64,000 nucleotides of DNA from Macrostomum lignano. Lineage: Eukaryota. The notes beneath the pieces are model-generated. The model was not told where the DNA came from and ran no database searches. It saw only the letters and a list, made by a program, of their open reading frames with translations. Below are positions 36,198-39,066 of this stretch, piece after piece; position 1 is the first letter of the stretch, and every line of letters starts with the position of its first letter. The translations under genes and the position numbers were made by a program. Location: the NCBI GenBank assembly GCA_002269645.1, contig NIVC01000378.1:48352-112351 (forward strand), in the 5' to 3' direction.

Positions 36198-39066
36198 ATA
36201 GATAGATAGATAGATAGATAGATAGATAGATAGATAGATAGATAGATAGATAGATAGATAGATAGATAGATAGATAGATAGATAGATAGATAGATAGATA
36301 GATAGATAGATAGATAGATAGATAGATAGATAGATAGATAGATAGACAGATAGATAGATAGATAGACAGATAGATAGATAGATAGATAGATAGATAGATA
36401 GATAGATAGATAGATAGATAGATAGATAGATAGATAGACAGATAGATAGATAGATAGATAGATAGATAGATAGATAGATAGATAGATAGATAGATAGATA
36501 GATAGATAGATAGATAGATAGATAGATAGATAGATAGACAGATAGATAGATAGATAGATAGATAGATAGATAGATAGATAGATAGATAGATAGATAGATA
36601 GATAGATAGATAGATAGATAGACAGATAGATAGATAGATAGATAGATAGATAGATAGATAAATAGATAGATAGATAGATAGATAGATAGATAGATAGATA
36701 GATAGATAGATAGATAGATAGATAGATAGATAGATAGATAGATAGATAGATAGATAGATAGATAGATAGATAGATAGATAGATAGATAGATACATAGATA
36801 GATAGATAGATAGATAGATAGATAGATAGATAGATAGATAGATAGATAGATAGATAGATAGATAGATAGATAGATAGATAGACAGATAGACAGATAGATA
36901 GATAGATACATAGATAGATAGATAGATAGATAGATAGATAGATAGATAGATAGATAGAGAGATAGATAGATAGATAGATAGATAGATAGATAGATAGATA
37001 GATAGATAGATAGATAGATAGATAGATAGATAGATAGATAGATGGATAGATAGATAGATAGATAATGCGAAATGAAACCACGCACACAGTTGAAGCAAAT
37101 TCACAATTTCTTTAATTCTAAGAAAAGAACCGAATTTTCGACCTAAACAGGGTCTTCGTCAGGGTATATTGTAAATAAAAAATAGATAGATAGATAGATA
37201 GATAGATAGATAGATAGATAGATAGATAGATAGATAGATAGATAGATAGATAGACAGATAGACAGATAGATAGATAGATACATAGATAGATAGATAGATA
37301 AATAGATAGATGGGTAGATAGATAGATAGATAGATAGACAGATAGACAGATAGACAGATAGATAGATAGATACATAGATAGATAGATAGATAGATAGATA
37401 GATAGATAGATAGATAGATAGATAGATAGATAGATAGATAGATAGATAGGCAGATAGACAGATAGACAGATAGACAGATAGATAGATAGATAGATAGATA
37501 GATAGATAGATAGATAGATAGATAGATAGATAGGTAGGTAGATAGATAGATAGACAGATAGACAGATAGATAGATCGATAGATAGATAGATAGATAGATA
37601 GACAGATAGATAGATAGATAGATAGATAGATAGATAGATAGATAGATAGATAGATAGATAGACAGATAGATAGATAGATAGATAGATAGATAGATAGATA
37701 GATAAATAGATAGATAGATAGATAGATAGATAGATAGATAGATAGATAGATAGATAGATAGATAAATAGATAGATAGATAGATAGATAGATAGATAGATA
37801 GATAGATAGATAGATAGATAGATAGATAGATAGATAGATAGATAGATAGATAGATAGATAGATAGATAGATAGATACATAGATAGATAGATAGATAGATA
37901 GATAGATAGATAGATAGATAGATAGATAGATAGATAGATAGATAGATAGATAGATAGATAGATAGATAGATAGATAGATAGATAGATAGATAGATAGATA
38001 GATAGATAGATAGATAGATAGATAGATAGATGGATAGATAGATAGATAGATAGATAGATAGATAGATAGATAGATAGATAGATAGATAGATAGATGGATA
38101 GATAGATAGATAGATAGATAGATAGATAGATAGATAGACAGATAGACAGATAGATAGATAGATACATAGATAGATAGATAGATAAATAGATAGATGGGTA
38201 GATAGATAGATAGATAGATAGACAGATAGACAGATAGACAGATAGATAGATAGATACATAGATAGATAGATAGATAGATAGATAGATAGATAGATAGAGA
38301 GATAGATAGATAGATAGATAGATAGATAGATAGATAGGCAGATAGACAGATAGACAGATAGACAGATAGATAGATAGATAGATAGATAGATAGATAGATA
38401 GATAGATAGATAGATAGATAGATAGATAGGTAGGTAGATAGATAGATAGACAGATAGACAGATAGATAGATCGATAGATAGATAGATAGATAGATAGATA
38501 GATAGATAGATAGATAGGTAGGTAGATAGACAGATAGACAGATAGATAGATAGATACATAGATAGATAGATAGATAGATAGATAGATAGATAGATAGATA
38601 GATAGATAGATAGATAGATAGATAGATAGATAGATAGATAGATAGATAGATAGATAGATAGGTAGGTAGATAGACAGATAGACAGATAGATAGATAGATA
38701 GATAGATACATAGATAGATAGATAGATAGATAGATAGATAGATAGATAGATAGATAGATAGATAGATAGATAGATAGATAGATAGATAGATAGATAGATA
38801 GATAGATAGATAGATAGGTAGGTAGATAGACAGATAGACAGATAGATAGATAGATAGATAGATAGATAGATAGATAGATAGATAGATAGATAGGTAGGTA
38901 GATAGACAGATAGACAGATAGATAGATAGATAGATAGATACATAGATAGATAGTTAGATAGATAGATAGATAGATAGATAGATAGATAGATAGATAGATA
39001 GATAGACAGATAGATAGATAGATAGATAGATAGATAGATACATAGATAGATAGATAGTTAGATAGA
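36198..39066. repeat. (GATA)n megasatellite in two blocks split by a 118-bp hammerhead-bearing spacer (37065-37181)
   Basis: Direct reading; variant-unit patterns (GACA, TACA, GGTA) recur, indicating block duplication. Confidence 0.98.
37129..37165 (-). ncRNA. minimal type I hammerhead ribozyme motif (intact core)
   Basis: Minus strand: ACC CUGACGA A GACC-cuguuua-GGUC GAA AAUU C GGU. 3-bp stem I, complete core, 4-bp stem II, palindromic AAUU stem III, UUC cleavage triplet. Confidence 0.75.

Follow-up and report, generated by a model that had tools for sequence, protein, structure and literature searches.

Two hammerhead-bearing remnants of a probably Penelope-like retroelement family inside a GATA array of an unc-13 intron in Macrostomum lignano

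The DNA considered here is a stretch of 64,000 nucleotides from the free-living flatworm Macrostomum lignano (positions 48,352 to 112,351 of contig NIVC01000378.1, assembly GCA_002269645.1). We call the whole of it the window, and all positions are counted from its first letter. It holds part of an unc-13 gene, and within an intron of that gene a long GATA microsatellite is interrupted by two related islands, one of which carries a minimal hammerhead ribozyme (min-HHR). The gene is on the minus strand. A weak Pfam C2 match in concatenated minus-strand open segments first pointed to an exon at 40750-40921 (acceptor ttttctcag, donor gtgagac), which encodes the beginning of the C2A domain. The PDB entry that it matches best is 2cjt, 'UNC-13 homolog A', the Munc13-1 C2A domain (E=5.8e-5). 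The next C2A exon is at 30939-31083, also minus strand (acceptor cttttacag, donor gtaactgag; 2cjt, E=8e-5). A third C2A-matching segment, whose exon limits are approximate, lies at 28614-28718 on the same strand (tblastn, E=0.003). The three tblastn pieces are colinear and the splice is phase-consistent, with the codon split between the first two exons giving DFI-F-RAP where Munc13-1 has DFM-F-EI. The intron between these two exons, 40749-31084 (9,666 nt), encloses the whole GATA block and both islands, all in sense orientation to unc-13. The initial annotation had placed the ribozyme motif in sense in an unc-13 intron, and the three exons bear this out. The C1-C2B-MUN-C2C part of Munc13-1 has no tblastn match in the window; the query, which ran from C1 onwards, was validated at 2558 bits against PDB 7t7c.

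On the minus strand the order is unique DNA, (TATC)~471, island B, (TATC)216, island A, (TATC)72 and unique DNA again. The first of these arrays, which have no strand of their own, is (GATA)~471 at 37182-39066 (1.9 kb, 5' of island B on the minus strand). It is followed by (GATA)216 at 36198-37064 (867 bp, between the islands) and (GATA)72 at 35453-35742 (290 bp, 3' of island A on the minus strand). Tandem Repeats Finder (TRF) joins the first two into one 2.87-kb block, (ATAG)716, at 36198-39066. Island B had been called the only non-GATA island. This holds for the 2.9-kb array, but a homologous island at 35743-36197 adjoins it, before the further 290-bp GATA array, and had been overlooked.

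Island B (37065-37181, minus strand) is 117 nt long and reads as the 3' end of a retroelement. It consists of a leader of about 15 nt, the min-HHR at 37129-37165, and a 68-nt tail ending ...GTGTGCGTGGTTTCATTTCGCAT beside (TATC)n. Read directly from 37165 to 37129 on the minus strand, the motif is ACC-CUGACGA-A-GACC-(CUGUUUA)-GGUC-GAA-AAUU-C-GGU, in DNA letters ACCCTGACGAAGACCCTGTTTAGGTCGAAAATTCGGT, exactly as the initial annotation gave it. Helix I is ACC:GGU (3 bp). Helix II is GACC/GGUC (4 bp) with a 7-nt loop, and an unpaired A precedes it. A palindromic AAUU stands at 15.1-16.1, directly between GAA and C17, with no loop. Cleavage is predicted between 37132 (C17) and 37131 (G1.1), where it had been placed before. 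The word intact, which had been used for this ribozyme, overstates the case, since helix I has 3 bp, helix III amounts to four A-U pairs without a loop, and no Rfam hammerhead model matches. What can be said is that the core of island B has all of its nucleotides.

It is worth asking how often such a motif should occur by chance. The loose pattern CTGANGA-N6-30-CGAAA is found twice where 1.3 are expected per window. Because this is not significant by itself, a purpose-built descriptor modelled on the published min-HHR was used instead. It starts with helix I (3 bp or more), CUGANGA and at most one extra nucleotide, after which comes helix II (4 bp or more), with G10.1:C11.1 as its closing pair and a 3-12-nt loop. 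These are followed by GAA, an A...U palindrome of 2-8 nt, a nucleotide other than G at position 17 (H17), and the continuation of helix I. The island B site is the sole full match in the window, and none appeared in second-order Markov simulations of the window (0/300). The core plus helix II alone is found 2 times against 0.007 expected. The motif is real and is not a product of chance.

The second of these core matches is in island A (35743-36197, minus strand), a 455-nt longer copy of a related element with no open reading frame (ORF). Its hammerhead core, at 35800-35826 on the minus strand, reads CC-CUGACGA-A-GGCC-(CAGUCCA)-GGCC-GAAA-CUAACGUUC. The two islands share a 46-nt ribozyme block with 36/46 identical positions (78%; pairwise E=5e-8). 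They also share a downstream box, GTGTGYGTGGTTT (written GTGTGTGTGGTTT in the feature entry for island A), and a terminus ...TTYGCA(T) (CTTTTGCA) that runs straight into (TATC)n in almost the same register. The initial annotation had taken island B for the end of a small retroelement. The longer copy, with the same ribozyme, box and terminus, supports that part of its claim. About 15 nt precede the ribozyme in island B and about 370 nt in island A, so B looks like the more severely 5'-truncated copy. Searches of the window with blastn, nhmmer and the descriptors found no copies beyond A and B, and the heads of the islands contain no tRNA-like head of a short interspersed element (SINE).

The comparison of A with B is informative about which parts of the motif were kept. 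All eleven nucleotides of the core are the same in both copies, as are the extra A and the pair G10.1:C11.1. The loop has three changes. The second pair of helix II is altered on both sides, being G-C in A and A-U in B. The rest of the hammerhead did not fare so well in A. Helix III is at most a 2-bp hairpin, the segment at its position (ACUAACGU) is not in register, and helix I cannot be drawn. There is no convincing placement for the cleavage triplet or helix I. A long-hairpin helix III with the downstream GGUUU as helix I was considered and rejected, as no U16.1-H17 precedes GGUUU. The hammerhead of island A is incomplete or degenerate.

The published min-HHR of metazoan Penelope-like elements (PLEs) is a type I hammerhead without helix III or loop 3 that has an active site only as a dimer (PMC4209133). 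Beyond what the descriptor of that study holds, its features are G10.1-C11.1, a palindromic 15.2-16.2, a conserved nucleotide between 9 and 10.1, and a short helix I (about 4-5 bp) whose loop 1 is not defined (PMC4209133). Island B has C3-U4-G5-A6-N7-G8-A9, G12-A13-A14, A15.1...U16.1 and H17, and island A has both boxes. At the level of sequence, island B departs from these hallmarks in helix length only. Two of its features, an extra nucleotide following A9 and a loop-less palindromic helix III, are published hallmarks of the class (PMC4209133), so the earlier assignment to PLE-type minimal type I hammerheads stands. Min-HHRs reside in the terminal repeats of PLEs, and most genomic ones are solitary and ascribed to truncated PLEs; the flatworm Schistosoma mansoni has thousands of them (PMC4209133). 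Its Cercyon min-HHR is the closest parallel in form: type I, CUGANGA and GAAA boxes, an unpaired nucleotide between A9 and G10.1, G10.1-C11.1, no loop 3, palindromic 15.x-16.x (AAUU here), a short helix I without loop 1, and solitary dispersed copies in a flatworm host (PMC4209133). It differs in that no flanking PLE ORF or second terminal repeat is seen here and that both of our copies lie inside (GATA)n. A search with the Rfam models gave no hammerhead match at the gathering threshold across the window, nor at E<=10 in 35300-37400. This is to be expected because the Rfam models need a helix III hairpin. The result is compatible with a min-HHR, and it shows that the motif belongs to none of the canonical type I, HH9 and HH10 hammerheads.

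The position of the ribozyme also fits. Canonical PLE hammerheads lie near the 3' end (PMC8557442). In the Poseidon elements of Anolis, genomic copies end at internal start sites of reverse transcription some 85-120 nt past the hammerhead (PMC11167929). Our islands end about 50-70 nt past the ribozyme and so have the same layout.

The same variant is found outside this worm. A metagenome scan gave two near-identical eukaryotic contigs, L001 (3751-3779, minus strand) and L002 (2340-2368, plus strand), from Ga0123355 and Ga0123357, that contain CCCUGACGA-A-GGCC-(CUUUCAA)-GGUC-GAAAC. They are non-coding eukaryotic DNA with unrelated flanks and no microsatellite, and no reverse transcriptase (RT) ORF lies within 6 kb of the variant. 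The extra A between 9 and 10.1 is present in B, A and these contigs alike. The contigs serve only to supply a third version of helix II. At its second pair they have G-U, so the three versions show A-U, G-C and G-U at one position with 100% of the cells paired. This is consistent with a real helix, although it is not statistically significant at n=3. The contig variant has a better helix I (CUACUC:GAGUGG) and stands beside an apparent tRNA-derived SINE fragment. A scan of viral contigs gave 14 matches, mostly unpaired chance ones with no relation to the A/B family, and a full-text search of the literature with the ribozyme sequence string returned primer coincidences only. Elsewhere in the window, a 23-bp tandem repeat at 46324-46547 (9.7 copies, 99% matches) has a unit that contains CTGATGAG. 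It was rejected as a hammerhead, having no GAAA partner and no helix II.

Folding does not favor an active ribozyme. For the 46-nt motif the hammerhead fold (-6.4 kcal/mol) has the same energy as an alternative minimum-free-energy fold, and shuffled sequences fold just as well (z=0.15). In the 126-nt stretch 37061-37186 the minimum-free-energy structure breaks helix II. The pair probabilities of helix II and helix I are 0.79 and 0.23 in the bare motif and fall to 0.17 and 0.02 in a 450-nt context, with helix I of B ranging over 0.02-0.25 in the ensemble. An AAUU/AAUU duplex alone is unstable at +2.2 kcal/mol. Published single min-HHRs have no detectable self-cleavage, and their dimers and trimers have low activity (PMC4209133). 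The motif is thus probably too weak to cut RNA alone, and a lone monomer in the pre-mRNA would be expected to cleave little or not at all.

One can imagine that the two copies on one pre-mRNA make up the dimer. Helix II of copy A is stable (probability 0.8-0.97), but its helix III segment is not complementary in register to that of B. We rejected the A+B heterodimer on this ground. Since A also lacks a helix I, the two copies cannot form the dimer. The proposal that the ribozyme could cleave the nascent intron is not supported by these results, among them the short helix I, the unstable AAUU and the minority share of the hammerhead helices in context.

We now turn to the array. The initial annotation had left open whether the element targets or seeds such repeats. 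A unit-by-unit map of the 37182-39066 array reveals a higher-order duplication of about 884 bp, in which a pattern of variant units, P, occurs at 37253 and again at 38137. Both copies of P have more than 20 variant units in identical order. This duplication is evidence for unequal exchange within the GATA microsatellite. It also supplies a candidate empty site for the insertion of B. The filled site is GATG-(GATA)5-[B]-(GATA)17-P and the paralogue, around 38090-38136, is GATG-(GATA)10-P. Lone GATG units number 3 among 757 units, and all are just upstream of a P copy. The paralogy probably spans the insertion point of B. Because there is a paralogous stretch without the island, we favor the insertion of B into a pre-existing array after the duplication.

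The boundaries of the arrays point the same way. At 39067 the GATA array meets unique sequence, and no related element is there. The largest array is not the 3' tail of a copy of the A/B family, since it lies 5' of B and is bounded by this element-free sequence. Of the two options, then, targeting is favored by the paralogue and the element-free 1.9-kb array, and seeding is disfavored. That a single array holds two diverged copies, oriented alike and with nearly the same 3' junction, suggests that the GATA repeat is preferred. A bias of PLEs toward microsatellites is known, with Naiad in (TA)n and Chlamys in (CA)n and (C)n, and a zinc-finger linker has been hypothesised to play this role in Neptune (PMC8557442). 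A second array, a very pure (ATCT)180 at 58315-59035, is inverted relative to the 35-39 kb block and has no island. Its 5' flank at 58.3 kb is unrelated to islands A and B, and a weak CAGACGAAGACCG match beside it at 58299-58311 looks like chance.

We argue that the best explanation is two independent insertions of 5'-truncated, min-HHR-bearing PLEs, or of non-autonomous elements dependent on PLEs, into a (GATA)n array that already existed in the first C2A intron. We hold this to be probable. The islands would be 3'-terminal remnants of a hammerhead-bearing retroelement family, most likely PLEs or short elements mobilised by them. Both would have entered existing (GATA)n/(TATC)n in the same orientation by target-primed reverse transcription (TPRT), which keeps the 3' end and leaves the 5' point variable. 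The 3' module retained in this way would be the ribozyme block, the tail of about 50-70 nt and the terminus ...TTYGCA(T). Unequal exchange would have reshaped the array later. Having no helix III of its own, the min-HHR would form an active site only by pairing its palindromic 15.x-16.x with that of a second copy. In the source elements the min-HHR would sit in terminal repeats and be kept by selection, and such selection would explain that core and helix II, in copies otherwise diverged, show either no change or a compensated one. At the unc-13 locus the copies would be passengers.

Several points weigh against this explanation. The empty-site argument depends on one marker unit to the left of B, which is worth about p=0.05. 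A preference for (GATA)n cannot be proven with n=2 copies, and the literature yielded no PLE with (GATA)n as its target. Islands A and B share about 46 + 13 nt plus the terminus only, and they may belong to different subfamilies. Helix I of B has 3 bp where published PLE min-HHRs have 4-5 bp, and helix II has 4 bp where those of Schistosoma and Drosophila have 6-8 bp. Finally, the window contains no coding remnant of RT or of a GIY-YIG endonuclease, part of it having been screened crudely only. For this reason the PLE link rests on the type of ribozyme and its position near the 3' end.

The lack of coding remnants raises the question of whether A and B are instead complete, or nearly complete, short non-autonomous units, SINE-like or retrozyme-like derivatives of PLE terminal repeats that were mobilised in trans by PLE enzymes. 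Both islands lack an ORF, PLE coding sequence is absent from their surroundings, and the variant in L001 and L002 is likewise without an RT in its neighborhood. A preprint argues that the retrozymes of animals are pLTR-related non-autonomous derivatives of PLEs (10.64898/2026.07.22.740005). However, A and B differ fourfold in length and have no common 5' end, which fits 5' truncation and not a defined unit. They have no tRNA-like head, they do not form head-to-tail tandems of 150-450 bp, and their ribozyme is of the minimal type rather than the canonical type I of retrozymes (PMC7229834). We think this scenario unlikely. A different possibility is that the microsatellite is the product of the insertions. 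Many TPRT elements end in simple repeats that are able to expand. If the element had its own (UAUC)n tail, this could have seeded the arrays, and both copies are indeed followed 3' by (TATC)n in almost the same register. However, the repeat lies on both sides of both islands, and the largest array is 5' of B with only unique, element-free sequence beyond it. The paralogous array segment without an island and the pure (ATCT)180 array without an element are also difficult to reconcile with seeding. We regard it as quite improbable.

A functional role in cis is less probable still. In such a role the ribozyme would cleave the nascent unc-13 intron, alone or paired, and modulate the long isoform that contains C2A. 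Island B has all core nucleotides and is in sense orientation in an intron that splits C2A, and a part in mRNA biogenesis has been proposed for the conserved hammerheads in amniote introns (cited in PMC7229834). The biochemistry is not on its side, as monomers of the class show no detectable cleavage and dimers little (PMC4209133). In Anolis no RNA-seq reads end at the cut site of the PLE hammerhead, and cleavage was not needed for insertion in vitro (PMC11167929). Here helix I has 3 bp, AAUU is unstable, the hammerhead helices reach only 0.02-0.17 in the 450-nt context, and copy A cannot supply a matching helix III. Retrozymes are also reported to be depleted from introns, which implies selection against active ones there (10.64898/2026.07.22.740005). 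We consider the cis role very unlikely. The last rival, a chance motif in AT-rich spacer DNA, could appeal to the 1.3 loose matches expected per window and to the silence of Rfam. It is effectively refuted by the simulations of the full descriptor, the excess of core plus stem II, the two homologous copies with a compensatory change, and the recurrence of the same variant in L001 and L002.

The explanation we prefer, truncated insertions into an existing array, has precedents among other elements. Dong in (TAA)n, Waldo in (ACAY)n and Mino in (AC)n are microsatellite-specific retrotransposons of the kind without long terminal repeats (LTRs). They resemble our islands in orientation-specific TPRT insertion into one simple repeat, with several copies per array. 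They are long interspersed elements (LINEs) of the APE/RLE class, another class of retroelement, and have no hammerhead. Among PLEs, the Naiad and Chlamys clades, and by hypothesis Neptune, are found in simple repeats as 5'-truncated copies whose target-site duplications cannot be read (PMC8557442). Those clades mostly lack canonical hammerheads and use mono- or dinucleotide repeats, whereas here the repeat is the tetranucleotide GATA/TATC, a hammerhead is present, and the preference is suggested by two copies. The endonuclease (EN)-deficient telomeric PLEs Athena, Coprina and Terminons also have a hammerhead near a 3' terminus that abuts a simple repeat. It adjoins short reverse-complement telomeric repeats at the 3' end, and the elements join chromosome ends through complementarity to the G-overhang (summarised in PMC8557442). 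Our copies lie inside an intron, at an internal locus, with 50-70 nt between ribozyme and repeat.

Hammerheads are known from two other settings that might be compared. The non-LTR retrozymes of animals are non-coding, bear hammerheads and probably depend on PLEs (PMC7229834; 10.64898/2026.07.22.740005). They differ in being head-to-tail units of 150-450 bp, expressed as circular RNA, with canonical type I ribozymes that have loop-loop contacts. TRF found no tandem unit of this kind, and what we have is two unequal, diverged, non-tandem fragments of 455 and 117 nt with 867 bp of GATA between them and a minimal motif. The amniote HH9 and HH10 share the sense orientation within an intron of a protein-coding gene. 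They are complete, monomer-active and ultraconserved (De la Pena & Garcia-Robles 2010, cited in PMC7229834), whereas ours is a minimal motif derived from a transposable element, without helix III and without a match to the Rfam HH9 or HH10 models.

The analogy to telomere-attaching PLEs can be pushed further. M. lignano could have a lineage of PLE-derived hammerhead elements that inserts specifically, and in one orientation, into (GATA)n. Priming would occur through the ...GCA(T)/(UAUC) junction, and intronic copies would undergo dimer-dependent cleavage that affects pre-mRNAs such as that of the unc-13 long isoform. We put this forward as a speculation with a rather small chance of being right.

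The remainder of the window is also rich in repeats. Minisatellites nearly fill the unc-13 introns and their flanks. Their arrays number more than 30, have repeat units of 14-54 bp and in many cases reach 1-3 kb. They are found in 1-35000 and 46000-63000, with examples at 12021-14899, 22986-25295, 26070-28566, 33214-34894 and 48507-50562. This is a striking repeat load for one gene region. On the unc-13 strand, downstream of the C2A exons, an ORF of about 636-639 amino acids at 2975-4885 (minus) has no Pfam domain and no homologue among 5.8 billion proteins, and a coding-like stretch at 7821-8732 (minus) repeats the octapeptide SPPQVSRQ. These may be one or more large, variable N-terminal exons of the long isoform. 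On the opposite strand, 53534-54763 (plus) is a single-exon ORF of 409 amino acids that looks like a multi-pass membrane protein or G-protein-coupled receptor and has no Pfam match. A further plus-strand ORF, 18112-19647, has an RNase H domain (Pfam E=3e-13) and represents the C-terminal portion of the ORF of a non-LTR retrotransposon. Its RT part is missing, 22/29-bp tandem arrays stand on both sides, and the named relatives that match it best come from M. lignano (54-62% identity). At 63272-63652 (plus) an ORF of 122 amino acids resembles the N-terminus of a retrotransposon gag and has no Pfam match. Two UniRef models from M. lignano, P0024 ('Pecanex-like') and P0026 ('Arm-DNA-bind_2 domain-containing'), have 96-100% identity to the unc-13 exon pieces. 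Both are chimeric mis-predictions, made of C2A exon pieces and intronic open frames of this locus.

We found no literature linking M. lignano to PLEs or hammerheads, and with this work a free-living flatworm joins the hosts in which minimal hammerheads of the PLE type occur. It must be noted that this class of motif is already well described, is abundant in flatworms, and is barely active even when conditions are favorable. The min-HHR is weak and has no partner, and in an intron of 9.7 kb full of repeats it is most likely neutral. The consequence for the biology of unc-13 is probably small. A practical result is that two gene models of M. lignano can be flagged as chimeras of this locus. The islands themselves are a clear small example of two independent insertions in the same orientation in one tetranucleotide array. 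If the preference for (GATA)n is true, a lineage with a hammerhead and a tetranucleotide target would join the PLEs known for a microsatellite bias, and this would offer a convenient system for studying how a GIY-YIG endonuclease or a zinc-finger linker reads simple repeats.

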